64,000 nucleotides of DNA from Mantamonas sphyraenae STR306 (taxonomy: Eukaryota; Protista; CRuMs), in assembly GCA_026936335.1 (NCBI GenBank), contig JAPMXV010000032.1, positions 338,226-402,225 of the forward strand, written 5' to 3'. This document shows, piece by piece, positions 1 through 29,472 of the stretch. The stretch's first letter is position 1; each line of letters begins with the position of its first letter. The notes beneath the pieces are model-generated. The model worked only from the letters and a program-made list of their open reading frames with translations. It had not been told where the DNA came from and made no database searches. A program made the position numbers and the translations under genes.

Positions 1-3000
1 CAGCCTCGCCGTGCTCAACCGTGCCGTGCTTCCCGACGCCGCCGATCCAGTCGATGCACGACTCGACTGACGACGCAACGACGCCGTGGCTGCCGCCGAC
101 CCCGACCCCGACCCCGACCCCGATCCTGTCAGTGTGCTCTTGCGTGCCATCTTTGGCACCAATGCCTCTCCGTCCTCGTCGCTCGTGTCTGAATCGTCCG
201 CCACATGCACCGGGGCGGGTTCATCCTCATCCACAGTGGTGGTGTTGGTGGTGGTAGTCCCAATGGTGCTGCCCTGGTAGCTGTTGCTTGTGGGCATGGG
301 CAATCCCACACCGTCGTCGTCACTCGAGTCATCGTCAGCGGGATGGTTGGGCAACGTTGCACGTGTCTTTGTCCTTGTGCCTGACGGTCCCTTGCGTCCT
401 CGCAAACTGCCTGCCGTCATCCCCGTCCCTGTGGCTGCCACCACAGCCACCACAGCCTCTTCCTCCCCCTCTGATGATGATGAGACACCCCCACCACGTC
501 CACGTCCTCCTCTGTCGCTTCCAGACGTGTCCTCTCCACTCAGATCGCTGTCGTCCAGATCCAACGCTGCCATCAACTCCTCCCGTGAACTCTGCGGTTG
601 CATGAAATCCGTCGTGCCTCCCTCCACTGCACCTGTCGACGCCTCTAGCTTGTGTGTGGCCACCGCCTGTGCACCTGCACCTGCACCTGCCCCTGCCCCG
701 GGTGCCACACGCCTGCTGCCACGTGTGTTCTTGCGTCGTGGCCCTGCGTTGTTGCCCTTCCTCCTTCCGTCACCACCACCACTCAAATCCTGCATGGCCA
801 CCGCCTCCGACCCGTCGTCCATTATCTGCGTCGTGTTGGCCATCGGCGCCGCAAACGACACATCCTCGTCCTCGTCCGAGTACTGCTCTCCATGCTGCTG
901 CTCCTGCTTGTGATCCTCCTGACCATCACTTCCATCATCATCATCATCATCCTCATCCGCACTGCTAATCACCCCTCCATCATCATCCGACTCGTCGTCG
1001 TCGTCGTCGTCATCCGACGAAGCATGCCTGCTGCCCTTCTTGCTCTTGGACTTCTTGCCATCCTTCTTCTTGTTCTTCTTCTTGTTCTTCTTCTTCTTGC
1101 TCTTTGTGTCCTCATCGCTGTCGCTGCCATCGCTGTAATCCATCTCTTCGTCACTGTGGTCGTCGCCGCGATCCTTGGCCCCGCGTTCGCCCGTGGATGT
1201 TTTCACAATGTGCAGAAACACGTCCTCCAGACTCGTCATGCTCACCGTGAAATCGCTCAGCCCCAGTTTCTTCTGGTTCTTGCGCAGGTACGCAAACAGC
1301 TTGGGCATGTCGCCCACCCGCTTGCGTGGCACCGTCATCGACACCGTCTCCTTGGTTTTGCTCACCTCGCTCGTGAACAGCGAGCCAAACTTGCGTCGCA
1401 GCGTGCGTTCCAGCTTCTTGGCCGACGTCCCCGCCCCGTCCTTGATCAGAATCAAACGGTAGCCGCTGCCAAACTTGTTCTTCAGATGCAACGACGACCC
1501 GATGCACTTCATCTCGCCACGTGCCATGATGCCAATCTTGTCCGACAACACGTCCGCCTCCTCCATGCTGTGCGTGGTCAGGATGATCGCCCGCCCCTGC
1601 TTTGCATTCTCAATGATGTCCCACACCTGGCGACGTGCCACGGGATCCATCCCGGTGGTGGGTTCGTCCATAAACACCACCGGCGGGTCGCCACACATGC
1701 TGATGGCCACACTCAGACGCCGTTGCATGCCTCCACTGTACGCCGAGGACACCACATCCTTCTTGTCCATCAGATGGACCTCTTCCAACCGTTCCTGGAT
1801 GTGTGCTTCCACCTGCGAGCTGGCCACGCCTCGCATCCACGAAAAGATGCGCAGGTGTTGTGCCCCGGTGAGTTCAGGCCACAGGTGGTCAAACTGGGGA
1901 CACACACCCACCCGGTTGCGAATCTGGTCCACTTCGTCCCGCACCGAGTATCCGTCCACCCGAGCGTCGCCGGACGAGGGCGGAAACAGCCCCGTCATGA
2001 TGCTCAGCGTGGTGGTTTTGCCCGCGCCGTTGGGGCCCAGCAGACAGAACAGCGTGTTGCGTTTGATGTAGTAGCAGATGTCCTTGACCGCCTCAAAGTC
2101 ACTGGCCGACGACACAATCGGGTAGCGCTTGTACACCTTGCGCAGGTTGCGCACCACAATCTGTGCATCGTCCGGCTCGTTCCCACCCATAATCACCTCC
2201 CGCTCCTCCTCCACGTCGTCGTCCATCTCCTTGAACTTCTTCACGTACGCACGACGCCGTCCGCGCAGCAGCGAGCGGCCCGTCCAATACGAAGGGGTGA
2301 GGAAGAACCAGGGCGAACGGCTGGCGGCAAACGAGTTGGGCAGCACGTTGTCCAGGTACCACGCAAGCACAAAGTAAATGGCCCAGTCGTACAGCAGCTG
2401 CATGTACACCGCCTGCAATGGGTAGATGTCGTCCGTGGCATGTGTGGCAATGTCCGCCCACCGGATCCCCTCGGGTGCCTTGCCGGGCTCCGTGCTGATC
2501 GACTTGGCCAGCAAGTCGTCCAGGCCCTTCTGGAACACCACGGGGGCGGCAAAGGACACGTAGAAGCGCACGTCCTCCGCAATATTGTTTGTGTAGATGA
2601 TGGTGGAGGTGATGCCGTTGCCCACCATAAAGATGAGAAAGAGCAGAAAGGCCACAATGTTCGCCACGCGCACCTTGCTGATGAACGACGACAGAAGGAA
2701 CGCAAGCGCGTTCATGCATGCGCTAAACTCCACAAACAGCACCGTGTAGGTTTGCCAGTCGTTGTACACAAACAGGCCAAAGTCCAGGAAGTACCCTGCC
2801 ACTCCCATGCCTGCAATGCTGGCCACAATGATGGGCACGTCGTTGATGAACCACGTGAGCCAAAACACAGAGTCCTTCAGACCCGCCTGTTTCAGTGCCA
2901 ACCGCAGCCGGTTCTCCTTTTCGCCCACATACACGTTGACCATGAAGATCAGGTGGATGAAGAAGGATGCCAGGATAAACAAGCCCATCGTCGCCGTGTC

Positions 3001-4278
3001 CTCAAACGGAGGCACCACCAGTGGCTTCACAAAGTCCCGTCCGTCAAACTTGAGCGTCGTGTTGGTGTTCTCCGTCTCAAAGTCCACTGTGTGTGATGAT
3101 GATGATGACGATGATCGCCGCACCCCGTGAGTCAGTGTGTCCCCCCCCCCTTCCCTCCCTCTCTGTCTCTGTCTCTCTACGTATGTCACTGCTCGCCACT
3201 GCAACTCACACTCTGCCGCCATGATGCGCGTGTGGTACGCCGCAAAGATGGTGTTGTAGTAATCGCGCTGCCACTGGTTTGCACCTGGCCACATGGTCGT
3301 GTTGAGCTGCACCGCCACACGAAACTCGTGGATGGGAATGGTGAGGTTGTTGAACTGGGTGTCCAGTCGCCAGAACACATAGCCTCCTTGGCTTTGGTTC
3401 TGGTTGGCCTTGAGCCAGTCGTCCAGTGCGTACGGCGTGTCGAATCCACGCACTTCCGACTCTGGAATCACAGGATTGTTATGCCTACGCACGTGGTCGA
3501 TCAAGTAGCGCACCTGCACGTTGTCCTGCGGTGCATATGTGATTGTGTAGCACGGTTTGGCCCCCTTTGTGCATCGAGGAATGTCCGTCCACAGAGGCAC
3601 CGCTGTACGTGTGTGTTTTCCGTCATGCCCATGCACCATCCACCGTGTATCCCACACCACCCGTCCGTTTCCACCACCGCGTCCGTTTCTCGTGTCAGTA
3701 ACTCCTCTCTGAGGCGTCCGTTGAGGGAAAAAGCAAAAAACGCCCCTTCAACGCGCGTTTTTTTGTCCACGAAACGGACGCGCAGTCTGCAAAGGGGCCC
3801 GTGTCACACACACACACACACACTCCTTTGTTCTCAACCAAACACATACACACACACTGGACTCTCTCTCTCAGGAACCAGAGGCGTTTGGAGGATAAGG
3901 TCACTTACACACGCGTTCGGGCGTCTCGGAGCCGTAGGTGCTGATGACCCAGAGGGCGACCACAAAGATGGCGGGCATCAGCAGACGCAGCAGAGTGGTG
4001 GGCCAATTGTTCAAAGAGAGCAGAGCATTCTTATACGTGATGGCTCGAATCTGGCGCAGGCGAACGGAAATAGGGTCGTCACTGCCTTTCTCAATGACAA
4101 CTCGTTTCTTGGCCGGCACGTCTTGCAGCACCACCTGCTCCTCCCTCGTCTCTTCATCGTCCTTCTCAACCACTTCTTGTTCCTTGTCCCCGCTTTCCAC
4201 ATGCACCACTGCCGTTCCCGTGTCCTCCTCGTCGCTGCTCCCGTCGTTCTTGCCCTTCTTTCGACTAAACCGACCCAT
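1..4278 (-). CDS. ABCA-subfamily half transporter (TMD-NBD) with long low-complexity C-terminal tail; 3' end runs off the window. Exons 4278-3909, 3602-3210, 3086-<1
   Basis: Manual translation gives Walker A GPNGAGKTT, signature YSGGMQRRLSVAI, Walker B VVFMDEPTTGMD and H-loop LTTHSMEEAD. N-terminal TM helix LLRLLMPAIFVVALWVIS. Phase-compatible introns GTAAGT..CAG and GTGAGT..CAG. Spot checks keep the frame open to position 1, which explains its absence from the ORF track. Confidence 0.92.
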
Positions 4279-4378
4279 GGCGTGCCTTGCTCCGTGCTTC
4301 TTGTCTCCCCCTGCGCGTCCATCCGCAACCAAACTCAACTTTCTCTGCACCCCACCGGCCCACGAATCACACATCACC
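4279..4378. promoter_or_regulatory. Putative bidirectional promoter between the two ABCA genes (100 bp ATG to ATG)
   Basis: Divergent ATGs at 4278 (-) and 4379 (+); promoter function inferred from position only. Confidence 0.6.
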
Positions 4379-7300
4379 ATGGCCAAGGACGGATACGAGC
4401 CCGTATACTCGTTCTCCGACCAGTTTGTGGCCCTCTTTCTCAAATCCGTCGCCTTTCAACGCTCCCAGAAAAAGACTACGGTTTTCATGATTCTGGCTCC
4501 CCTGGCTCTGGTGAGTCCTCTGCCACGCCCCGTTCTGCGCACCTGCTCGCTTCACGCTCTTGGAGCGTACGCCAATGCGTGTGTGCTCGTGTGTACATGC
4601 TGTGACGCCTGCAGAGACGAAAACCCGTCCTTGTTGTGCGTTTCCCGCCCTGCGAAACGGCCCTTGCTTTTGCTGACACTTGCTGCTCGCCTTCTCCTTG
4701 TCAGCTGGGCGGCCTCATTGGACTCAACATCTGGCTGCAGCAGGAGCTGGCCAACATTGACAGTGCCAAGCAGCCCGAACTGCTGCACCCGCGCATTGAG
4801 AACTTGGGAGGCCCGCTGTACGTTGTCTGCCGAGGACAAGAGGAAGAGCCACCACCCACAAGCACAGCCACTCACATCCACTCAAAACCATCCCCCCCCC
4901 ACCCCCATCATGCAACACACACACACACAGTCAAACCATCTATTGGAGCGAACGCCGTGGGTACCAGGAGTACTACGAGGTGCCGTACACTGAGAAGCTG
5001 CCGGAAGGGTCTGTGTCAGTGGGAACACCGCCTCAGAACCTGTCGTTTCTTGGCACAGGCATGCTATCGAATGCACCTTATGTGCCAGTGGGCAAGTTTC
5101 CCAACGGATCGGTGTATCCCATCTACGACTTGCAAAACAATGCCAACAACATCACCAACGCGGCCCCGTTGATGCTCAAGTATGACACCGAAGCAGCCAT
5201 GAATGCGTTTGTACGTGAGCGATACGGCGTCAAGGCGCTTCAGGTGGCTATGGAGTTCAACCGCACGTTGTATGACCCTCCCACGGTGGAGGCCGCCATC
5301 TCCGTCAACGTCAGCGCCGATTACTACAGCTACAAGCAGCAGTTGACGCAGGCCACGGTGTGGATCCTTCAGGGCATGTGGAAGACAGTGCCCTGGCCCA
5401 AACGCAACCAGACAGGGTGTGGCATCCCGTCGTGGAGCCACTGCTACTGTTGCGACCCAAGCACGCAGGGTGGAAGCAAAGGAGGAGGAGGAGGAGGCGG
5501 TGGCAGCGACAGCAACGGCCAAATCATCTCCACGGAGAACTGTTGCAACTTTCAGGGCTGCACGGTGGGCACGTACAGCGTGGATACCAACATGGGCGTG
5601 GGAGGCATCGACAACAAGCAGTGTGTGACGGCATCACGCCGGGACATTGGATACTACAACACAGGCATCAAGGACTTTCCCAAGGACGCCAGCACGGTGA
5701 CGTTTGACGTGATCAGTTTCGTGCAAGGGGTGTTCCTCTCCATGTTGGGTCTGCTGTACCTGCCCATCTTTGTCGGGTACATTGTGGCCGAGAAGGAGGA
5801 CCGAGTGTTGTACGTGATGAAGATGATGGGCCTGCGCACCAACATCTACTGGCTGGTCCACTACATCTTTGACCTGTGCATCTTTCTGGCTGCCACCGTG
5901 GTCACCATGCTCACCGGGTACCTGGGGGGCATCCGCTTCTTCACTCAAAACGGCCTCGTGGTCCTCATTGTGTACTACGTGGTGTGGGCCCATGCGCTCA
6001 TTGGCATGTGCTTCTTCATTGCCGTGTTTTTCAACAAGAAGCGCCGCGCCTCCATCCTCAGCTTCATGCTGGTCATTGGCTCCGCCGCCGTGTCCAACAT
6101 CCTTGTGCCCACCATCAACAGTGCCCAACACACCGACCTGGAGCTGTTCTACTACTCCCTCTTCCCGCCTCTGGCCTGGTCCCGTGGCATCTTTCTCTTC
6201 TCCACTGCCAGCGTCCTGGGCAACGTGCCCATCACCCTGGCCAACCTCACCACCCAGGGCAAGCTCATCCTGGACATTATGATCTACATGGCGGGCGAGG
6301 CCGTGGTGTTCTTCCTGCTCACCTTTTACCTGGAGGCTGTGGTGCCCCGTGGCTACGGCGTCAAACTCAGCCCCTGGTTCTTCCTCACCCCGGGCTACTG
6401 GGCCGACGTGTGCAACCTGGAGAGCGACGTGGAACCGCAGCGAGTGACGCGTGCGGATCTGGAGGGCAACGTGTTTGGCAAGATGCTGCGTGGCAAGAAT
6501 CAGGAGGAGTACAACTACGACTTGGAGCCGTTTGACGTGCGTGCCGAACGACAACGCGTCTACAATGGCCAATCCGAGTCGGTGAGCTATGCCGAGGCCA
6601 TGCGCATGAGTGGCGCAGCCTCGGCGGGCGAGGATGCCACCCAGGAGGACAAGAAGAAGGGCAAGACGAAGGGCAAGAAGAAGGGCAAGGAGGACAAGAA
6701 GAAGAAGAAGAAGAAGGACAAGGGCAACAGCAAAAAGGCAAAGAAGGCCAAGCATGAAGATGACGACGATGACAACAACAGCAGCGACGATGAGGCGGAG
6801 GATGAGGCGGAGGCTGAGGAGGAGGAGGAGGAGGAGGACCGTGCAACGAAGCAGAAGCGAAGCAACAAGAACGAACGGATGATGGTGCGTGTGTTGAACC
6901 TGCGCAAGGTGTACAGTGGACGGCCACCCAAGGTGGCGTGTGCCAACCTGACCATTGGCATCAACAAGGGCGAGTGCTTTGGCATGCTGGGGCCCAACGG
7001 GGCGGGCAAGACAACAGCCATCAGCATGCTGTCGGGACTGTTTGGACCTACGTCGGGTACGGCGTACGTGCATGGGTATAGCATCCGCACACAGATGGAT
7101 AGGGTGCACATGGTGATGGGTGTGTGTCCGCAACACGATGTGCTGTGGGGCGACCAGACACCCAAAGACCATCTGCGATTCTACGGACGCCTGAAGAACA
7201 TGAAGGGACCCGAGTTGGAGGAGGAGGTGCACGAACGCCTGAAGGACGTCAACCTGGTGGATGTGGCGGACAACCCAGTGCACACCTTCTCTGGTGGCAT

Positions 7301-7842
7301 GAAGAGGCGTCTGAGCGTGGCCATTGCACTGGTGGGCCATCCGCAAGTGGTGTTTCTGGACGAACCCACCACGGGTCTGGACCCACGCTCCCGCCACGAG
7401 CTGTGGGAGGCCATCAAGAAGGCCAAGAAGGACAAGGCGTTGATTCTGACCACGCACTCCATGGAGGAGGCCGACTACCTGTGCGACCGCATCGGCATCA
7501 TGGCCAAAGGGAGTGCTGCGTTGCATTGGAGAGAGCTCCGAACTCAAGCAGCGCTACGGCGCAGGCTACAAGTTTTCGCTGACTGTGGACGAATCAAAGC
7601 CACAGGAGGACGTGGATGCCTTTCTCGATCCTTTGCTGCCGGGACGAGTGGAACTCAACAACCTGGGTGGCACGCGTAACTTTGAGGTGCCGCGTGCCGG
7701 CGTCGATCTGGCCACCGTGTTTGACACCATCGAGGCCAAGAAGAGCGAAATCGGCATTCTGGACTGGGGCATTTCCCAGACCACACTGGAGGAGGTGTTT
7801 CTCAAGATCAGCCAGGAGAGTGAGTTGGAAGGCGAGCAGTAG
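4379..7842 (+). CDS. ABCA-subfamily half transporter. Exons 4379-4510, 4705-4817, 4931-7842, with one apparent extra base near 7506-7511
   Basis: Motifs IVAEKEDRVLYVMKMMGL, GPNGAGKTT, FSGGMKRRLSVAIAL, VFLDEPTTGLD and LTTHSMEEAD. The ABCA C-terminus (LRCIGESSELKQRYGAGY...WGISQTTLEEVFLKI) continues in ORF 7513-7842. GT-AG introns are phase-compatible. Confidence 0.93.
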
Positions 7843-11403: not shown

Positions 11404-13624
11404 ATGAACAAGGCGCTCCTTGCTGCGTTCTTGGCTCTGCTGTGTCTGATGGCTGGCGTGTGCGCGTCGCCTGCAGCTGTAAGTAGACACTCGTGTGGAT
11501 GGCGAGTGTGATAGAGACCCGTGGGACGCTGTGGAGCCCGGTTTGTGGAACAAAAGGGCCGGAGGTGGAAAAACGGCGCCGCAATCAGACTCGGGTCCGT
11601 CCCTCTCTGGGGCCGCCAGCACGTGCCACAGAGCCCAACGACACGCACTGACACATCATACGCATGGACACACACAGCAGCAAGCCGTGGATATCAACCA
11701 AGAGACGGCAGACTTTGAGTCTGATGACATGGCGTCTGCCGCAGAGGAGGAGAACGAGAACGACGAGGCGTCGGCTTCCGAGTCTGAGGAGGAGGCAGAG
11801 GCAGAGGAAGTGACGGACGAGGCACCTGCCACCGATGGGTGGGCGCAGGTGGTTGTTCCCATGCACGAGTTTGAGGAGCACGATCTGCGTGAGCTGCTGA
11901 TGGACGACGACGAGAACATGTTCTTCCGTCGTGTGTTCCGCGCTGTGGGTCGCTTTGTGGGCCGTGTGGCACGTGGCATTGGCAAGGGCATCAGCCGTGT
12001 TGCTCGTGCTGTGGGCAAGGGCATCAGCCGCGTGGCACGTGGTGTCGGCAAGGTGTTCAAGGGTGTTGCTCGCTTCGTGGGCAAGGCCATCTCTGCTGTG
12101 GGATCGTTCATCCAGAAGGTCGGTGCTGGCATTGGTTCGTTCATTGCCAAGATCGCCCCTGTGGTGATGAAGGTGCTGAACAGCCCGTTCTTCAAGATCG
12201 CTTCGATGGCCATCTCGTTCATTCCGGGTATCGGAACGGCGTTTGGCATGGTGAGCGGTGTGCTTGGCAAGCTGGGTGGCGTGGGTGGTCTGATTGGCAA
12301 CGTTGCGTCCAAGGGTCTGTCGTTCCTGAGCGGCATCACCAACGGCGGCGGTCTGCTCGGCAACCTCGCATCTGGTCTGAGCAAGGGACTGTCGTTCCTG
12401 AAGGGCACTGCTCTGAGCGGACTGACCAAGGTGTCTGGCTTCATTGGCAAGATCCAAGGATTTGCCAGCAAGTTTACGACGGGCAACCTGTTCAGCACGA
12501 TCAAGGGCTTCGTTTCGGAGCTGCCCATTGCGAAGCAGATCATGAACGGCCCTGTGGGTCAGCTGATTGCCAAGGGCAAGGCTCTGTTTGACAAGTTTGG
12601 CAACAACCCGATTGGTGCCGCTCTGAAGGACAAGTTCAACTCGATCAAGGATCAGCTTGTTGGCAAGCTCCAGGATAAGCTGCGTGGCATCAACCCGTTC
12701 GACAAGGTGGCCAACACCCTTGGTGGTATCCAGGACAAGCTGACGCGTATCATCGGTGGTGAGCGTGTCGGTCTCAACGACCTGCTTGGTTCTCTGCAGA
12801 ACAACGCTCAGGTCGAGGGCCAGATCCAGCGTGAGCTGGGTACTCAGGTGCTGACCCAGCGCCAGATTGACCAGCAGTTCATGGCTCTGCGTGACCAGTT
12901 TGAGCTGGAGGCATCGCAGATGCCTGGGTTCAAGTACTCGTGGCAGAAGGTTGTGGGTGCACCTGTGGCGATGGTTGAGAAGGCCCGCAAGGAGGTTGGT
13001 GACTTTGCCGCCGATGTGCTTGCGTTCAAGGGTCTGCGCACCAAGGCTCTGACCATCCTGAACCGCTACGGTAGCAAGACCACCGTGGCTGTGCTGGGCA
13101 ACGTGGGCCGCTACAGCCTGTCTGAGACGCTTGTGAACGCCATGCGCCGCTACACGGAGTATGGCAAGACGCTGTTTGGCAAGAGCTTTAACGCTGGCCT
13201 GAAGCTGAACCCGAGCGTTCGCAAGATTGTGACGGACGGCAAGGGTGCCATTGGCACGCTCAAGACTCTGATGGACGGCGGTGTGCAGAACTACAACGCC
13301 ATCAAGGGCATGTTTGACATGCAAAAGTCGGAGGACAACCTGCTGGCTCGTGCCAAGAAGCTGATCGGCGAGGAGGTGACCCTGAAGAACATGCCTGAGG
13401 TCGAGCGTCTGCTGCAGAAGAAGACCGAGCTGCTCAAGATGGACACCGCCGGCGATGTTGTCATCACTCTCGAAGAGATGAAGCAGCTGTACGCACGCCT
13501 GCAGCAGGCCGAGGACCAGGCCGCTGCCGCTGACGCAGCCAAGGCCAAGCCCAAGCCTACGCCCAAGCCGCGTCCCCCCACGCGCCGTCGTCGTCGTCGC
13601 CGTCGTCGCCGTCGCCGCTGGTGA
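11404..13624 (+). CDS. Unknown secreted prepro-protein, copy A (~673 aa): signal peptide, acidic pro-region, cationic amphipathic region, helical domain, Pro/Lys linker, Arg12-Trp tail. Exons 11404-11478, 11678-13624
   Basis: Exon 1 MNKALLAAFLALLCLMAGVCASPAA; 199-nt intron GTAAGT...CTGAC...CACACAG joins in frame to the long ORF; coding-like codon bias; a paralogue lies on the opposite strand. Confidence 0.88.
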
Positions 13625-13798
13625 TCAATTTGTTCATTCCCCGTGAGGTGAATGATTGTTGCCGTGGACGGCCTGCCAAGACCGTCTGTGACGCGTTGTT
13701 TGCCGCGCACAAGACAATGAAGAAATGGAAATCACTCGCAGACAACCAACCAACAAAATTGCTTGTAATTGAAACAGTCTTGGTGCAAACAGAACAGT

Positions 13799-16179
13799 TT
13801 ACTCAGACTCCTCGGAGCTGTCGTTGTCGCTCATGTCGCTCTCGCTGTCCTCGCTGTCCTCGACGCGTCCGTGCTGCATACCCATGAATCGAGCACGCGG
13901 GTGGACGTAGCCACCACGGCCCGTGTAGGGAGCACTCGGGTTGGTGTACCCACCACGACCCTGGAATTGGTAAGGAGCACGCGGGTTGACATAGCCGCCA
14001 CGACCCTGGTAAGGAGCACGCGGGGCAGGGGTGGGGCGAGCAGGAGCCTGCTCGGCAGCAGCAGCCTCTGCTTCTGCCTGGGTCAGGCGAGCATACAGCT
14101 CCTTGACCTCCTCCAGAGTGATCACAACGTCACCCTCGGTCTCCATCTCCAGCAGCTCGGTCTTCTGCTTGAGAAGGTTGATCACCTCGGGCATCGACGC
14201 CAGCTCGGCCTCCTCACCCAGCAGCGTCTTGGCACGGCTCAGCAGGTTGTCTTCGGTCTTCTGGACGTCAAACATACCCTTGATGGCGTTGTAGTTGTCC
14301 ACACCGCCGTCCATCAGAGTCTTGAGCGTGTCAATGGCACCCTTGCCGTCCGTCACAATGGAACGCACCTGCGGGTTCAGGGTCAGACCTGCGTTGAAGT
14401 TGCGACCAAACAGCTTCTTGCCATACTCCGTGTAACGGCGCATGGCGTTCACAAGCGTCTCGGACAGGCTGTAGCGGCCCACGTTGCCCAGCACGGCAAC
14501 CGTCGACCTGCTACCGTAGCGGTTCAGGATGGTCAAAGCCTTGGTACGCAGACCCTTGAACGCAAGCACATCGGCGGCAAAGTCACCAACCTCCTTGCGG
14601 GCCTTCTCGACCATCGCCACAGGCGCACCCACGACCTTCTGCCACGAGTACTTGAATCCAGGCATCTGCGATGCCTCCAGCTCAAACTGGTCACGCAGAG
14701 CCATGAACTGCTGGTCAATCTGGCGCTGGGTCAGCACTCAGTACCCAGCTCGCGCTGGATCTGGCCCTCGACCTCGGCGTTGTTCTGCAGAGAACTGAGG
14801 AGATCATCCAGACCGACACGCTCACCACCGATGATACGCGTCAGCTTGTCCTGGATACCACCAAGGGTGTTGGCCACGTCATCAAACGGGTTGATGCCAC
14901 GCAGCTTATCCTGGAGCTTGCAACAAGCTGATCCTTGATCGAGTTGAACTGATCCTTCAGAGCGGCACCAATCGGGTTGTTGCCAAACTTGTCAAACAGA
15001 GCCTTGCCCTTGGCAATCAGCTGACCCACAGGGCCGTTCATGATCTGCTTCGCAATGGGCAGCTCCGAAACGAAGCCCTTGATCGTGCTGAACAGGTTGC
15101 CCGTCGTAAACTTGCTGGCAAATCCTTGGATCTTGCCAATGAAGCCAGACACCTTGGTCAGTCCGCTCAGAGCAGTGCCCTTCAGGAACGACAGACCCTT
15201 GCTCAGACCAGATGCGAGGTTGCCGAGCAGACCGCCGCCGTTGGTGATGCCGCTCAGGAACGACAGACCCTTGGACGCAACGTTGCCAATCAGACCACCC
15301 ACGCCACCCAGCTTGCCAAGCACACCGCTCACCATGCCAAACGCCGTTCCGATACCCGGAATGAACGAAATGGCCATCGAGGCGATCTTGAAGAACGGGC
15401 TGTTCAGCACCTTCATCACCACAGGGGCGATCTTGGCAATGAACGAACCAATGCCAGCACCGACCTTCTGGATGAACGATCCCACAGCAGAGATGGCCTT
15501 GCCCACGAAGCGAGCAACACCCTTGAACACCTTGCCGACACCACGTGCCACGCGGCTGATGCCCTTGCCCACAGCACGAGCAACACTGCTGATGCCCTTG
15601 CCAATGCCACGTGCCACACGGCCCACGAAGCGACCCACAGCGCGGAACACACGACGGAAGAACATGTTCTCGTCGTCGTCCATCAGCAGCTCACGCAGAT
15701 CGTGCTCCTCAAACTCGTGCATGGGAACAACCACCTGCGCCCACCCATCGGTGGCAGGTGCCTCGTCCGTCACTTCCTCTGCCTCTGCCTCCTCCTCAGA
15801 CTCGGAAGCCGACGCCTCGTCGTTCTCGTTCTCCTCCTCTGCGGCAGACGCCATGTCATCAGACTCAAAGTCTGCCGTCTCTTGGTTGATATCCACGGCT
15901 TGCTGCTGTGTGTGTCCGTGCGTATGATGTGTCAGCGCGTGTCGTTGGGCTCTGTGGCACGTGCTGGCGGCCCCAGAGAGGGACGGACCCGAGTCTGATT
16001 GCGGCGCCGTTTTTCCACCTCCGGCCCTTTTGTTCCACAAACCGGGCTCCACAGCGTCCCACGGGTCTCTATCACATTCGCCATCCACACGAGTGTCTAC
16101 TTACAGCTGCAGGCGACGCGCACACGCCAGCCATCAGACACAGCAGAGCCAAGAACGCAGCAAGGAGAGCCTTGTTCAT
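13799..16179 (-). CDS. Unknown secreted prepro-protein, copy B: paralogue of copy A with PRAPYxGRGGY repeats and an acidic tail. Exons 16179-16105, 15905-13799; two single-base deletions near 14921 and 14738 (error or pseudogenisation)
   Basis: Near-identical to copy A from the ATG, including the 199-nt intron. ORFs 14841-16088 and 13799-14737 join if the two missing bases are restored. Confidence 0.8.
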
Positions 16180-20621: not shown

Positions 20622-23600
20622 ATGTCCTGGAGTGGATCACCCAAGTCGACGGGATCCCAATCTCCAATGGGTACCCCTTCGTCGTCTGGGTACACCCCGC
20701 GGTACGGGGGCGGCTCACCGTCGCATTTCACGTTTGAAACCACCACCAGCAGCAGCACGAGTTTCCTTGCAGCCAGTTCACCCAGTAGCACCCTGCATGG
20801 CTCAGGCAGACCCTACGCATCATCATTGCCATCGTCTCCATCCTCACCGGCATACACCCCTCGTCGGTCGAGCACCTCCTCCTTTGACGGCACTCTGGCC
20901 CTGGACGAGCAGGTCAGCACATGTCTCCCCTTTTTGACACCGCGTGGTCACTGCTGACACCGTACCTGTGCCACCCCCCCCCACACACACCCCTCCCCTC
21001 CCATGTCCCTCTCCATCACCACAGGATAACACGCGTCTGCTGTCTGCTCTGCGTGAGACAGAGTCGCGCAAGGCGACCTTGAAGAAGCGTCAACGGAAGG
21101 CGCTGGCGGCGACACGGGCGCGTTTGAACGCAAGCAACGCGTTCCTGGACAGCTACTCACAAATCAAGAAGGAGAGTGCAAGTGCAAGCCAGTATCTGAG
21201 CGTAGCCACACGGACGGCAGCATTGAATGCCAGTGTGAGCTCAAGCGACGGCCAAGGGGGAAGCAAACTGAGGGCAGCAACGGCCGGGGGCGCAGGGTCG
21301 TTGAAAGACGAGCTGAAAGCAAGCATTGCACACGCAGCCGAGGTGGAAGCGATGCTGGAACGGAGTGAGGCGGAACGGATGCGATTGGAAGAGAGTGTGA
21401 AGGGGAGTGAAGCCATGAGCAACGAGCTGGCGGGGGAGGCAAGCAGTTTGAGTGACGCGTTGACGCAGTCGGAGAGCAAACGGGAGGCATTGGTGCATGA
21501 GAACGCAGAGTTGGCACGGCAATTGCATCATGTGCAGGAGATGAATGGGATGCACGTGAGGGATTTGGAGGGGAAACTCAGTGAGGCAAACACACGCAAC
21601 TTTGAGCTGGGACAAAAGTTGGAGGAGGCCACGGCGAATGTGGAGAGGGAACGGGCGGCACGGAGGGAGGAGCAGGACGCATTGAGCAGAAGCATTGCGG
21701 CGGAACAACAGTGCAAACACACAGTGGAACGATTGCAGCGTCAATTGGATGCAGCGGCCATGCATGCCTCGCAGGAGAACGCACGTGTCGTGGCTCTGGA
21801 AGATGCCCAGGCCAGCCAGAGCAGCCACTTGGCCAGCGTTTCCGAGCGACTCACCGCCCTCAAGTACGAACACGAGAGTGTGCTGCGTGCCAAGAACACC
21901 CTTGATGACCAATTGGTCTCTCTGTACACTCTGGTCGACAGCATGGCCGCCAGTCTCGTGCAAGCGTCCCGTGAAAGCGCCGCCGCCGCTGCTTCCTCAT
22001 CTGGCGGCTCGCCCTCCTCCAGCAAAGAGGCCTCGGTGCTGCCCCTGGCAGTTACACGTGGCACCACCACCAAGGATCCAGCCAGTGCCCAGGAAAAGAT
22101 AGATGCCATGCTCACGCATTACAGCAGTCTCACCAGCAAGCTGCAGATGCAAACAGGAGCCCTGGAAACCCAGCTGGCTCGTGTCACTCAGGCTCAGGTA
22201 ACGGCACCTTTTTTCCTCCCCGTTGCCAGCACTCCCCCAGCCACCCACGTGACACCCACACTCACACCCACACACACCCACACACCCACACACCCACACC
22301 ACATGTGCACCCCCTCCCCCGTTCCCCATTGGGTACCACAGATGACGTTGCAGGATTCGTACGAGTCTGCGCAGGGGCGTCTGGAGAAGAGCGTGCAAAA
22401 GAGCCAGGAACTGCAGCTGCGTATGCAAGAGGCACTGCAGGAGTGTGCAATGGCACAGGAGGGCCAACAGCGTGCAGAGGAACACAGCAGTCTGTTGCAG
22501 AGGGATCTGGACGAGTGTGAATCGGAACGCAAGAGTCTGGCGTCGCAGGTGGAGTTGCTGACGGCGAGGCTGGAGAACCTGGGGAGCAAGCACCAGGGGG
22601 TGGTGACACTGTTGGAGGAGAGTCGACACGAAGTGGACATGTTGAAGGAACAGGCCAGTCACATGGCCAGTCTGCACAGTGCGGCAGCCAAGCAGAAGGG
22701 CCAGGAGTTGAACAAGCTGGATCGGGCGCTGCTCAAGGTGCAGGCGGAGTTGGACAACGCAGCCATGGTGGCACGGAAGAACGAAAAGGACATGGATGAG
22801 TTGCAGAGTCGAAACAGCAGTCTGAGTGGCCAGTTGAACGAAACCACGACACGGTTGGACAACGTGAGTGCGGAGTTGGGCATGTTGGAACGCAGCAGTG
22901 CCGACGAACGCACCCAATTGCAACACAAGTTGCAGGAGAGCCAACGCAAGCACACAAAGGCCAAGAGGGCATTGGAACGGTGTGAGGCGTTGGTGGAGAA
23001 GAAGGATGCCAAGGTGGCCGAGTTGCAGGCCGTCATCGAGGGTCTCCAGCGCGATCTCAAGGATTCGTCGGACATCATCAAGAACCAGGTGGCAGACTTG
23101 GGCAGCAAGGAGCGCACAGTGGCCTCCCAACTCGTGGCTGCCAATGCCAGTCTGAAAAAGGTGACGGCGGAGTTGGAACGGGAGCAGGGCATCACACGCA
23201 AGCTGCAGGAACGCCTGGAGGCAGAAACAGCCAGGGCTCAGGCCAACAAGCAGGAAATGCATGCGGTGCAAAAGACACTCACCAAGGTGCAAGCCGAACT
23301 CAAGTCCAAGACCAGGCAGGTGGAGTCGTCCAAGCGGCGTCTGGAGAGCGAGGTCAAGAACAGGTCGCGCTCAGAAGTGGCCGCCAGCGAGAATGGGAAC
23401 CGTTACAAGGAGGTGCAACGGCAGAAGGAACAGCTGGCCAAGGATGTGAGCAGGCTCGGCGCTCAACTGGAGCAGCTGAGTGGCAAGCATGCAGCCGTGC
23501 TGGAGGACAGGACGGGTTTGGAGGAGGCGTTGAACAAACTGCGTGCACAGTACCAACAGGACAAGCAGACGGCGATGAATGCGGCCACGGCCCAGCAGGA

Positions 23601-26600
23601 TCTGATCTCGCAGCTGCGGGAGGAAAAGACGGTGTTGCAGGAAAAGCTACGTGACGGCGTGGGCACCATTGAGGAGCAAGAGCGCATGATTGACGACATG
23701 GAAACGCGGACGGCACGTGCAGAGGGCGAACTCAAGCAGCTGCGTGTGCGGTACGAAGCAGACATGGAGGCAGCGCACGAGAGCAACGTCAAGTTGGAGG
23801 GCGAGTTGCATCGCACACGCAAGCAGCTGGAAGGCACACAGGGCACGCTGGAACAGGTGCAACGCACTCTGGCACAGACGCAGGAGGAGATGAAGATGCA
23901 GGTGGGCAAGAGCACAGCCGCGTTGGAGGAGACGAAGGAGGCATTGGCAGACACGCAGGGCAAGTTGCAGGAGAGCGAAGCAGCACGTGCGGCGACGCAA
24001 GAGGCATTGGAGGCAACGAGGCAACGGATGAAGGAGGACGTGGGTGCGTTGGAAGCGGAAGTGGAGCGTGTGGAGGCGGAAGCAAAGGCAGCCAAAGAAC
24101 GGGCGGAAGACAAGATCAAGAGCAACGCAATGCTGCGCATGCAGTTGCAGAGTGTGAGCAACGACGTACAAACACAAAAGAGCAAACTGGTGGCGGAGAA
24201 ACGACGTGCGATGGAGACGGAGGAGCAGCTGAGTGGACAGGTGCGCATGCTGAACGAACAGAAGGACGACCTGCACAGCGAGCTGGCCACACTGACCAGC
24301 AGGTACAACCATTTGGAGACGGTGCACCAGCAATTGGTGGCCAAGCACGACGAAGCCACAAGCAACAACACGGTGCTGGGTAGCTCGGCTGTGAAGCTGA
24401 AGGACAGGGTGGAGTCTGTGGTGCGCGAGCGACAGGACATGGAGAAACAGCTGGGTGAGAGCAGGGCTCGGGACGCGGGACAGATTGCAGCGTTGCGTCG
24501 GGAGCTGGCAGACAAGAGTGAACGGTTGGAACGACTGCAGGCGGAACACGAGGAGAGGGTGGCGGAACACGAGGCACTCAAGGTGGACACGCGATTGCAG
24601 TCGCAGGCGCTGGAGGAGGCGGAAAAGAGTGTGGAGAGGGAACGGGCGGCACGGGAGAGTGCGGAACGCAAGGGGGTGAGCCAGATGCAGTTGTTGGGTG
24701 GGGAAAAGACACGATTGGCACAGGAAAAGACGGATCTGAACGAACGACTCAAGGTGCTGCGGCACGAACACGACACGTTGGCACGGGAACACGCACAATT
24801 GTTTGACGAACACCAGGCCACACTGGTGCGACTGCGTGAAACGACGGTGTTGCTGGAGAAGGAACGCAGCGGGCGTGTGGCCAGCACCGAGAAGCTGGAA
24901 GCGGAGGTGGCACGTGCGCAGGCCGAGGCTCACGAGTTGAACGAAACGCTGAACAAGGCACACGAGCGATTGGATAACACGGAACGGGCACTGGCCAGGG
25001 CCAAGGCGGATCTGGTGCAATGGGAAATCACAAGCGAGTCCCAAGCTGCGCAGCTGCAGGAGTGGCAGACTCGCTGGACGTCGGACCACACCAAGATTGC
25101 ACGCGAGCGTGAGGAGATGAAGGCGGCGGAAGAGACGCTGAACGAACGCATGCAGAGTGTGACCCAGGAAGTGACGCTGTTGCGTGGGGACAAGGAGCGA
25201 CTGGAAACGGCACACGGGGAACTGAGCACAGCGCACCGAGAGCTGCAAACAGAGGCAGAGAGGATGCGCACCAAGCTGAGTGAACTGAAGGAAAAGCATG
25301 CAGCGGTGGTGGAGGAGAAGCAACGGATGGAGGAGACCCTGAGCGGACAGGTGATCGCCCTGAGTGGAGAGGCAGTGAGCATCCGACAGGACAAGGAGGA
25401 GTACACGGACAGGACGGCACGGATGGAACGGCAGCTGGAGTCTGTAAACAGGGAACTGCGCAGTGTGCGGCAGGAGCTGAAGAACACCAAGGGCAAGGTG
25501 GCCAAGGCGGAGGAACAGTTTGCGGAGGAGAGTGGCTACTGGGCAAGCGAACGCAGTCTGCTGAAGGAGCAGGTGAGTCAATTGAGCAACGAGAACATGC
25601 GCTTGACGACGCACCGTGAGGAGTTGCAGGCCCATCTGCGGGAGGTCAGCGAACGGGAAAAGGGGTTGATTGTGAAGAGCCGGCTGGTGGACATGGTGAA
25701 GAAGACCAAGAGCAAAGAGGTGAACCAGTGGAAGAGCAAGTACGAAACGGAAGTGTACGAGGCCGGACAGCGTGCAGAGAAGCTGCAGGCGCGGCTGGAG
25801 GAGGCGTTCAGCAAGTACCAGGAGTTGCAACACACACACGAACACTTCCTGACCAAGACCCAGGAGATGCGCGACGCCTACGAAAGCCAAAGCAAGGAAC
25901 TGAGCGAACTGAACATGACGTTTGATGCGGAACACGCGCTGCGTCTGGACAGCGAGCGTGGCTTGCGCGAACGCATCGACAGCCTGATCACGGAGAAGAG
26001 CAAGCTGCAGATGGACAGTGTGCGTCAGATGAAGGAGCTGACAGACAGGGCAAGCGAGTACATGGAGGCCAACGAGGCGTTGGTGGAGGAGAACCGTGTG
26101 CTGGGCAAGAAGCTGACGGAGCTGCGTGTCAAGGTGGACAACGAAAAGTCGACGCGACGCAACAGCGAGGCGCACCTGACGGAGGAGATCCGCAAGCGTG
26201 TGGTGGAGCATGTGACGCTGAAGGAGAAGCATGCCAAGCTGGAGGAAGAGCATGGAGAACGCATGCAGGATCTGGAGGAGGCACGCATCCGCATTGCCGA
26301 CTTTGAGGTGGAGGTGATGCGACTGAACAAGAAGGTGAACGATCAGGCGGGTGCGTTGGAAGAGGGAGGAGCCAAGAGCAAGACACTGGGTCAGGAGCTG
26401 GAGGAGGAGAGGGAGGAGGTGAAACGACTCAAGGGGGAGCTGAGCGAGGAGAAGCACGCACACGAGTTGACCAACAGGGAGCGTGAGATGCTGAGCAAGG
26501 ACCTGGAGGAACGCAACAAGGCACTGGCAGAGGAGACGCAGAAGAATGGCCAACTGAACGGGGAGCGGGATGGATTGGCACGGGAGCTGGAGGAGTGGAA

Positions 26601-29472
26601 GGAAAAGTATGCGCAGCTGACAGTGGCCAAGGACGAGGTGGCCAAGATGCTGGCAACGACGCGATGGAAGCACACGATTGCCGTGCACCAGGGCGAACAG
26701 CTGAAGGAACGCGTGGCCGAGGTGGAAAAGGAAGCCGAGGTGGAACGGCTCAAGGTGGACGGGACCACAAAGGCAAACGAAAAGCTGAAGGAGACGGTCA
26801 GCGGACTGGAAACAGACGTGCGCGAGTGGCAACTGAAGTTGGAAGGACAAGTGCGCTCGACGGAAAAGGTGCAGGAGAAGCTGGATGCGATGCGTGAGGA
26901 GAACGCATCGCTTCAGGGCCGACTGAGCGACAGCCACGAAGAGAGCGGATCACGAGGGGTGCAGATCAAACAGTTGGAAGCCAAGGTGCGTGAGCTGGAA
27001 GACAAGCTGACCAACACGCGACGGGAACTGGACGACAAGGAGAACGCACTGGCTGTGGCGCATCGGGACCTGGAACAGACACGAGGTGAGCTCGTGAGCA
27101 GTGGCAAGAGTGGAGCAGAGCTGCAGGGGGAGGTGAACGGACTGTTGCGAGACATCGAAGGTTGGAAGGGTCAGGTGAATGAGCACAAAAAGACGGAGGA
27201 ACACTTGCAGACGATGCTGGACGAGGCCAAGGAACGTGTGCGCAAGGAGCAGGGCAACGTGACTGTGTTGGAGGAGCGTGTGCATGGCCTGGAGAAGGAT
27301 GTGCGAGAGTGGAAGAACAAGCATGCCAGCGAGGTGGAGGCAGTGCAGAGGGAGCAGGCGACGGTGGAAAAGATACGTGTGGAGCTGCAATCGACAAGCA
27401 GCGCACTGGAGGCGATGGAGCGTGCACGCAAGGAGGTGGAGGGCGAGTTGAAGAGCACACGCAGTGCCCTTCGCCAGGCAGAGAGCGAACACAAGATGGT
27501 GAGCAAGGATCTGGCGGAAGAGAGCAAGAAACTGGCGGCAGAGATGGAAGCACGTGCACACGCAGAGACAAAGCTGGAGGAGACGCGACAGGAGCTGAGT
27601 GACAAGGTGAAGGAGCTGGCCAAGGTGGACACAGAACGCAAGTTTGCAGAGGGCCAAGTGGAGAAGCTGGAGCAGGAGAAGGCCGTGCGGGAAGAGGAGC
27701 TGCGGGGTGTCAAGAGTGCCCTGGAACGTAGCAAGGAGGAGGCAACGAGTGTGAAGAAGAAGCTGATGAGCGTGGAGCAGGAAAAGGCAACGGTGAGCAA
27801 GCAGGAGAGCGAGCTGGCCGACCGCGTGGCACAAATGCGTCTGGACGCACAGAGGATGGACCAGAATCACATGCAACTGTCGCGCGAACACAAACAGCTG
27901 ATTGTGGCGCATGGAACGCTGCAGGAGGAGATGGAGACGACGGTGAAGAAGCACGAGGCACTGCGAGGAGCCTACGAACGGTTGACGGCGGAGCACAAGG
28001 AGCTGAGCGGACGCACGGCAAGCATGAATGCAGAGAACGAAGAGCTGCGCGGAGCCATGGGCACACTGAAGGAGGAGTACGGCCTGTTGAGCAAACAGCT
28101 GCAGGAGCTGACGCAGAGCGACGAAGGGGTGCAGGAACAGGCACGTGCGATGCACACCGAGTTGGACAGGGTGCGTGGCACGCTGGAGGCACTGACTGAA
28201 TCGGACGCAGCGTTGCAGGAGGCAAGCAGGGCGTTGGGAGTGTCGCACGAAGCACTCAAGGTGGAGTTGCTGGAGACGCAGAATGCACTGAAAAAGAGCA
28301 GCGGGAGCAACGAGGGACTGGTGGCAAGTGTGGCAGAGCTGCGCAGCACGCAAGAGACGCTGGAGAAGGCCAACACGGAATTGCGGCAAACCGTGCACCG
28401 ACTGGAGGAGGAGCGAGACAGGATGGGACGGGACAAGGCGGCGGCGGAGGAGGAGATGGGTGTGTTGACGAGGAACCAAAAGGCGCTGGTGAAGGAACAC
28501 ACGCAACTGGGCATGGAGTATCGCGAGGTGCAGGGGGCGCTGAAGGAGAGCAGGGCAGAACTGGAAAGGGGTAGGAAGGCACTGGAGGAGGCGAGCAAGA
28601 CGGTGGAGGCGCTGGAGAAGCAGAATGGAGAGCTTGCGGAGGAGTTGAGGATGCGAGACGAAGAGGTGGGACGATTGACACAGGAGGCCAAGGTGGGGGC
28701 AGCCGTGTCGGAGGAGTTGGGCAGGAAGGTGAGGACACTGAGCGAGCAGGTGGGCACACTGGCAGGGGACAACGAACGTCTGGCACGGGAGTTGAGCGAA
28801 CTGAATGTGGCACACCGCAGGGTGGTGGAGGAGCACAGGGAGCAAACGGAAGGACGTGCAGAGGCAAGCGCACAAGCGCGGGAGCTGGGCACGACAGTGA
28901 CAGAGCTGCGTGATACGATGGAACAGCTGGAGAGGGAGAACGAACGCAACACAGATGCACTGGCCAAGGTGCAGAAGGAACGCGGCGTGTTGGCAGCGCA
29001 GGCGAGGGAAAGCAACGCACAGTTGCGGGAGCTGACGGGAGAGCTGCGTGTGGTGCGTCAGGAGTTGGAAGCGTCGCAGGAGAGGGAACGCAAGGCAGGA
29101 GAACAGGTGGGCAAGCTGGGCAAACAGATGCACAAGCTGACAGAGCAGATGGACAAGCTCAGCGAAACGGACAAGAAGTTGGTGCACGACATGGGCGCCC
29201 TGGAGCAAGAGAAGCAGGCGGTGGAGGAGCAGAAGGACACGTTGCAACGCAAGGTGACTGCACTGCAGACGCAGTGCCAGAAGCTTGGCAGGGAGTTGGA
29301 GTCGCTCACCAACGAACACACCAAGCTGTATGGCGAACACGGAGCCCTGCGTGGCGAGTACGAGGTGGCCTTGCAGCAGCTCAGGGACCTACGCTCAGAG
29401 TTTGACTCGTTGCGCAAGGAGATGGATGCCGAGCGCCTCAAGATGGAAGAGGTTGCGCGTGGTGCAGTGTGA
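20622..29472 (+). CDS. Very long coiled-coil protein (~2,860 aa) with Ser/Thr-Pro-rich head. Exons 20622-20912, 21025-22197, 22342-29472
   Basis: E/K/L/Q/R-rich heptad sequence nearly devoid of Pro over more than 2,300 aa; GT-AG introns 20913-21024 and 22198-22341; no motor or globular domain recognised. Confidence 0.85.

Follow-up and report, generated by a model that had tools for sequence, protein, structure and literature searches.

A 64,000-nucleotide (nt) window of the genome of Mantamonas sphyraenae STR306 (contig JAPMXV010000032.1, positions 338,226 to 402,225) carries two closely similar genes, copy A on the + strand and copy B on the − strand, which form an inverted, tail-to-tail pair (11404-16179, in coordinates of the window), and this arrangement is supported by public reads. 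The pair is a real, selected gene pair of an undescribed family. According to our reading, which is based on physical chemistry and context and to which we give an even chance, the members of this family would be stored, protease-activated secreted pro-proteins of Mantamonas that bind and disrupt anionic prey (bacterial) membranes. M. sphyraenae, a flagellate belonging to the CRuMs, lives in the sea, glides and feeds on bacteria (PMC10492846), in agreement with the phagotrophic protist host proposed in a first-pass annotation of this DNA, which had been made from the sequence alone.

The first-pass annotation described, in both copies, a signal peptide on its own exon, an acidic segment of about 80 residues, about 199 residues without Asp or Glu that begin with an 11-residue periodicity, and no Cys past the signal peptide, and all of these features were recovered. 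The signal peptide, judged by eye, is the 25-residue exon 1 (11404-11478 and 16105-16179), and the acidic segment has 81 residues with a net charge of −30. From Phe-Phe-Arg-Arg at 11921, 199 residues are free of Asp and Glu with a net charge of +28, a run whose length was not attained when the mature sequence was shuffled 10,000 times (shuffle maximum 165). For the initial 66 residues of the mature part, the hydrophobic moment peaks with 0.79 at 98-99 degrees (mean 0.27 and maximum 0.52 in 5,000 shuffles), while their self-identity peaks at lags 11 and 22. No Cys is present in exon 2 of copy A or in either piece of copy B. The features of copy A, with C and L numbers used here and below as labels of contigs and loci, are as follows:

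11404..11478, + strand: exon 1, 25 residues resembling a signal peptide (judged by eye; the paralogues C51, C5 and C74 begin alike)
11479..11677, + strand: predicted intron, GT..AG, phase 0 (from sequence)
11678..13624, + strand: exon 2, 648 codons (open reading frame)
11678..11920, + strand: acidic pro-piece (charge count)
11900..11935, + strand: acidic-to-cationic junction, candidate processing site (same form at more than 20 genomic loci)
11921..12178, + strand: cationic amphipathic helix of ~86 residues with an 11-residue period (periodicity; modelled as one helix, with low confidence)
12179..12280, + strand: hydrophobic segment resembling a hairpin (conserved in five further genes)
12281..12517, + strand: Gly/Leu/Lys-rich region that closes the acid-free run (composition)
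12518..13540, + strand: helical region conserved in the family (in part modelled as a four-helix bundle)
13541..13624, + strand: tail with a Pro/Lys linker, 12 Arg and the stop codon (from sequence)

Copy B, whose reading frame is broken in the assembly at ~14921 and ~14736, was kept in separate, unjoined pieces; it is separated from copy A by a short spacer:

13625..13798, no strand: spacer of 174 nt between both stop codons, tail-to-tail (bridged by one DNA contig)
13799..14736, − strand: last piece of exon 2, with the diverged helical region, Arg-Gly-Gly-Tyr repeats and an acidic end (with run X4 coverage in the tail)
14737..14920, − strand: middle piece of exon 2, between both frame breaks (left unjoined)
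14921..15905, − strand: first piece of exon 2, with the acidic pro-piece at 15663-15905 followed by the acid-free amphipathic region (reading frame broken at ~14921)
15906..16104, − strand: intron, 98-99% identical to that of copy A (alignment)
16105..16179, − strand: exon 1, the same 25 residues as in copy A (from sequence)

The two copies are 99% identical over their first 1265 nt, intron included, while identity drops steadily from 89 to 68% in the 3' halves, and the tails differ (Pro/Lys and 12 Arg in copy A, Arg-Gly-Gly-Tyr repeats and an acidic end in copy B). This gradient from 5' to 3' suggests an older inverted duplication, the 5' parts of which would have been kept alike by gene conversion. 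In the diverged part, the nonsynonymous rate (dN) is 0.106 and the synonymous rate (dS) 0.402, with a dN/dS of about 0.26, and this part of the pair is under purifying selection. The assembly is contradicted by three DNA runs at the ~14736 break and by run X4 at the ~14921 break; since the reads disagree with it at both places, both breaks are probably assembly errors. The interpretation of copy B as a pseudogene was rejected. The frame breaks, the 3' divergence and the differing tails are points beyond the first-pass annotation.

Run X4, which is labelled "DNA?", lies on the coding regions of the two genes, with the tail found only in copy B among them, and is absent from the spacers; because of this restriction it was read as an RNA run, and both genes are apparently expressed. 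No spliced contig was found among the read contigs listed for the pair, and the intron is therefore given as predicted. Read depth is 112 on the contig over the shared 5' part and 54 on the bridging contig, a difference of ~2x that is consistent with two collapsed copies, depth being no measure of copy number. A perfect inverted repeat could stem from mis-assembly; however, the pair as an assembly artefact was rejected, because the copies differ in their 3' halves and tails and because their 3' ends are joined by a single DNA contig (13256-14329).

At least five genes in this genome belong to the family. Three further genes, C51, C5 and C74 (48%, 39% and 26% identity, respectively), have the same plan of signal, acidic piece, amphipathic helix, hairpin and helical core. 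Also detected were two fragments, in tandem, of the 3' part of the C74 paralogue (C74:156900-157250 and C74:162700-163050; L069, L070), with no 5' part visible in the DNA read. The cores of the family align and the tails do not, the latter being protamine-like repeats in C51 (net +170 over 636 residues), a long helical and Cys/Lys-rich extension in C5, and an acidic end in C74; the amphipathic part measures 200-340 residues. The view of the pair as a stand-alone system, taken in the first-pass annotation, has to be given up in favour of this five-gene family and of a module that is present on more than 20 loci.

A profile search of the genome with the junction gave 36 matches, which, combined with a further search, correspond to more than 20 loci as a lower bound. 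At a typical junction, the acidic tract ends in Asp or Asn; after one intervening residue comes Phe or Trp, in many cases with several Arg behind it, and then the amphipathic helix. Of about 21 true junctions, 16 have their first Phe or Trp 1-3 residues past the final acidic one, a count that is descriptive only, the set being partly chosen by the profile. Two class-3 lipases on contigs C57 and C32 (L028:1999-3252, − strand, and L050/L055) carry one module copy at the same place inside the lipase domain, after the catalytic region, and the C32 lipase has three additional copies in its N-terminal part. Three polyproteins on C57 (C57:290600-294100 and C57:307000-308000; L024, L043, L044, L054) contain near-identical ~130-residue Arg/Gly/Phe amphipathic units between acidic spacers; their antimicrobial-polyprotein layout is the cleanest in the genome, and they would be a better test object than the pair. 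The helix-plus-hairpin segment of the family is also present in the C57 proteins (E 4e-11 for one polyprotein) and in a Cys-rich protein on C42, which carries the module as well. In giant carriers with frames of 1,000-3,500 residues, which were read in 3-kb windows (L010-L014, L017, L018, L027, L048, L051, L053, L056, L059), the module precedes a beta-rich domain with unnamed bacterial look-alikes (Atlas 0.93) and no Pfam or PDB match, and some of these proteins contain long Arg/Val repeats with Cys pairs. A divergent pair of secreted acidic/cationic precursors, each with a Trp-rich motif at its end, preceded by a short acidic stretch, was also observed (C54:161000-164300, L025).

The shared module supports processing at the junction, but may also belong to a general packaging or targeting device rather than to lysis. 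In one such explanation, the junction is a mere sorting or condensation signal by which a secretory compartment receives unrelated cargoes, and the function resides in the C-terminal helical domain, unrelated to lysis. This would fit the range of proteins with the junction, which comprises lipases, Cys-rich proteins and giant beta-rich proteins, and also its position, at times in mid-protein and at several places of one protein; however, the amphipathic part of the family far exceeds the length of a signal and makes up the entire cargo of the C57 polyproteins, so that we regard this explanation as decidedly improbable. Alternatively, the module, composed of an acidic mask, the conserved junction, a cationic amphipathic helix and, optionally, a hairpin, may be a protease-gated head by which more than 20 secreted proteins (large lytic proteins, peptide polyproteins, lipases and giant beta-rich proteins) are targeted to membranes. 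These would form an as yet undescribed, modular prey-killing arsenal of a deep-branching eukaryote that arose independently of animal antimicrobial precursors; we put this forward tentatively, as a possibility on the doubtful side.

No relative outside this genome was found by any method. In searches made with the exons separately, Pfam, NCBIfam and PHROGs gave no significant family for the pair, only compositional tape-measure matches. Searches of 5.8 billion protein clusters with the core, the paralogue alignment and the N-terminal part returned nothing except one phage tape-measure protein, and the core had no match among 1.84 billion representatives. Scans of viral, metagenome and prokaryote DNA yielded no relative, scores in the ESM Atlas were at most 0.80, which is the noise level, and PDB searched by sequence gave nothing credible, its spike HR1 mimic (E 0.01) being a helical-composition match. 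The statement of the first-pass annotation that no recognised family matches is borne out by the family and protein searches. The searched collections are thin in protists, which means absence from databases and not confinement to one species. The weak tape-measure matches (PHROG 305, E 1.7e-5; P0001, E 1.4e-4) might point to a domesticated phage tail gene. This was rejected, because the query contains no tape-measure Pfam domain, the locus has no tail-gene context and its neighbours are eukaryotic; the matches are moreover confined to the low-complexity amphipathic part, while neither viruses nor prokaryotes gave a match to the conserved core. Phage origin and assembly artefact, taken together as one explanation, are largely refuted and retain hardly any probability.

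In structure models, the predicted local distance difference test score (pLDDT) was 36 for the whole mature chain, which is unusable, and 48 overall for the core; the N-terminal half of the protein gave no usable model. The segment 12962-13372 is modelled as a generic four-helix bundle (pLDDT about 60-74), and fold searches return generic four-helix bundles only. The best match (Z 7.6) is below the noise level for helical bundles, and the TIP47 bundle (Z 6.4) is tied with many unrelated bundles. These results bear on the explanation that the proteins handle lipids in the manner of apolipoproteins or perilipins, the 11-mer helix and the bundle wrapping and solubilising lipids of already killed prey for lipases, with no part in killing. 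The plan predicted here, 11-mer repeats and then a four-helix bundle, is that of perilipins and apolipoproteins (PMC5889406), TIP47 is among the tied fold matches, and the module is also present on lipases. However, the fold match is generic, and perilipin 4 has mixed charges (three basic and two acidic residues per 33-mer) and few large hydrophobic residues, in contrast to 199 acid-free residues with many Phe and Ile here. To our knowledge, lipid carriers usually need no 81-residue acidic pro-piece, which also counts against this explanation, and we consider it unlikely.

Secretion, cleavage and lytic activity of the pair are inferred from sequence, and the disruption of prey membranes may proceed as follows. 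The signal peptide would route the protein into the secretory pathway, where, judging from the charge match, the acidic piece (−30) would neutralise the amphipathic region (+28) in transit and storage. A protease would then cut the conserved junction, in the food vacuole or upon release. The cationic 11-mer helix would lie on the anionic membrane and the hairpin would insert, the membrane being permeabilised or broken into particles; more speculatively, the helical bundle and the variable tails might tune assembly or polyanion binding. For a bacterivore, the simplest use would be rupture of the prey's membranes, either inside the food vacuole or upon contact, aided by lipases with the same head. 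The matched charges, the sharpness and conservation of the junction and the existence of the polyproteins speak for a precursor that is masked until a protease opens it. The cut near Glu-Asn-Met/Phe-Phe-Arg-Arg, proposed in the first-pass annotation, stands as one candidate, near Asp/Asn ahead of an aromatic residue; its singularity does not, as there are at least two candidates and a cut after basic residues is as plausible. The genome contains two kexin-type P domains and only one C13 peptidase match of unclear type, which slightly favours the cut after basic residues. Legumain as the processing enzyme was not supported, since the sole C13 match may be a glycosylphosphatidylinositol (GPI) transamidase. 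Previous work showed that poly-Arg beside an amphipathic helix strengthens natural antimicrobial peptides (PMC12371492), so that such a run can belong to the active peptide, which tempers the preference for a basic cut site.

The membrane-disrupting role of the pair is further supported by the bacterivorous host, by the C57 polyproteins, which share the layout of complex cytolytic-peptide precursors (PMC8290080), and by the module inside two class-3 lipases, enzymes that work on lipid surfaces. The bulky hydrophobic residues and the lack of acids, unlike perilipin 4, point in the same direction. The layout and its statistics, the position of the aromatic residue at the junctions, the kexin-type P domains, the effect of poly-Arg and the restriction of run X4 to coding parts also speak in favour. 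Long, acid-free, Phe-rich cationic helices should favour anionic membranes such as bacterial ones, as is established for antimicrobial helices.

Several observations weigh against this role. The hairpin, confirmed as the most hydrophobic 19-mer, has a Kyte-Doolittle (KD) value of 1.68, borderline for a transmembrane helix. The mature chain after the junction comprises 567 residues without internal acidic spacers, so that release of short peptides is not evident, although further cutting may take place. No link to a pore-forming family was found by sequence (Pfam, PDB) or by fold search. As regards helical pore-forming toxins (colicin, ClyA, diphtheria T), which have a hydrophobic hairpin inside a helical bundle, a hairpin is present in the pair, the model of this part is unusable (pLDDT under 35) and the matches are non-significant (Pfam E 0.26, Foldseek E 1.4). 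Saposin-like features are missing (no Cys in exon 2 in place of the six conserved ones, no Pfam SapB match), no MACPF match was found in the genome, and the genome encodes separate saposin-like proteins. Segregation of acidic and cationic parts is very common among the secreted proteins of this genome and may be a general packaging device. A description of extrusomes or secretory granules in Mantamonas was not found in the literature, and lytic activity is a predicted function. Saposin-like proteins are the usual pore-formers of protists; the two genes of a tandem, multi-domain saposin-like pair at C70:256900-263750 are candidate precursors of conventional pore-forming or lipid-activator proteins.

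A further explanation is a polycationic extracellular material, that is, an adhesive, coat or prey-trapping secretion for gliding or grazing on anionic surfaces, which the acidic piece keeps soluble until release. Mantamonas glides on surfaces, the C51 paralogue has a protamine-like tail, long Arg/Val repeats occur in the giant proteins, and the deep run X4 coverage would suit structural proteins, depth being a poor measure. However, the strict helical amphipathicity and the conserved hydrophobic hairpin point to lipid rather than mineral or glycan surfaces, and residues for cross-linking are lacking (no Cys, few Tyr), which makes this explanation quite unlikely.

Little work exists on how free-living flagellates kill their bacterial food; most known effectors by which protists kill bacteria come from amoebae, and we found nothing in the literature on bacterial killing by free-living flagellate grazers of this kind. 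If the lytic role of the pair is true, Cys-free lytic pro-proteins of several hundred residues in CRuMs would extend the acidic-pro-piece design known from animal antimicrobial peptides to organisms far removed from animals, and they would be natural membrane-active sequences open to direct testing. Should that role fail, the presence of the junction on more than 20 secreted proteins would still point to a processing or packaging route that is as yet undescribed. The occurrence of the same acidic-to-cationic junction at these loci, including two lipases, three polyproteins and giant proteins, is new here, and the pair is an entry point to this genome-wide module.

The neighbours of the pair are ordinary eukaryotic genes, encoding MGM101, a CCZ1-like longin protein and a WD40 protein. 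A second inverted paralogue pair lies nearby at 1-7700, consisting of ABCA-type transporter genes that are 72% alike over 213 nt. A 2,842-residue coiled-coil protein with strong purine skew and without clear family is encoded at 20944-29472 (+). The region 35837-64000 (−) is occupied by a very large gene with ~128-residue bacterial-type cadherin/Ig repeats (Cadherin_4, Big_9), arranged in higher-order, near-identical 2688-nt blocks, whose several frame breaks are probably assembly errors within repeats.

Among known systems, the linear cytolytic precursors of spiders (latarcins, cupiennins, oxyopinins) share with the pair a signal peptide, a charge-mirroring acidic propeptide and a Cys-free amphipathic mature part, and the complex spider precursors with anionic linkers resemble the C57 polyproteins (PMC8290080). 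However, spider peptides have about 20-60 residues and are released at the processing quadruplet motif (PQM; Glu near Arg at −1), whereas the pair has a far longer mature chain, no PQM, no homology to them and a protist host. Its junction, Glu-Asn-Met before Phe-Phe-Arg-Arg with no Arg at −1, corresponds neither to the spider PQM nor to the Lys-Arg of frogs. As in animal cytolytic and antimicrobial precursors generally, a signal peptide and an acidic propeptide precede a cationic amphipathic helix in the pair; the short mature peptide of about 15-70 residues is not found, and no homology to a described animal family of this kind was detected in Pfam, protein clusters or PDB. Frog skin precursors, cathelicidins and piscidins combine an anionic pro-piece with a cationic helix and may start with Phe-Phe or Gly-Phe-Phe, as does the pair, although the piscidin pro-piece is C-terminal. 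The pair differs from all three in having no cathelin domain, no conserved frog signal or spacer and no Pfam or PDB match, and in being 10-25 times larger. Poly-Arg adjoins the helix in TP4, as in the pair (PMC12371492). Perilipins, apolipoproteins and alpha-synuclein likewise have 11-mer amphipathic repeats, with a four-helix bundle towards the C-terminus that is predicted in the pair (PMC5889406); unlike them, the pair is acid-free, strongly cationic and Phe/Ile-rich, has an acidic pro-piece and a hydrophobic hairpin, and shows neither their mixed-charge polar face nor a sequence or Pfam match. Amoebapores, naegleriapores and MACPF proteins share the killing of engulfed bacteria proposed for the pair, which has no Cys, no saposin fold and no MACPF domain. 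Phage tape-measure proteins have long Gly/Ala-rich amphipathic helices with an 11-mer period and give weak profile matches; however, the match is compositional, and the pair has a signal peptide, an intron, an acidic pro-piece and a eukaryotic context. While a member of none of the families tested, the pair appears, by analogy, to resemble an animal cytolytic-peptide precursor in its working, at about ten times the length.

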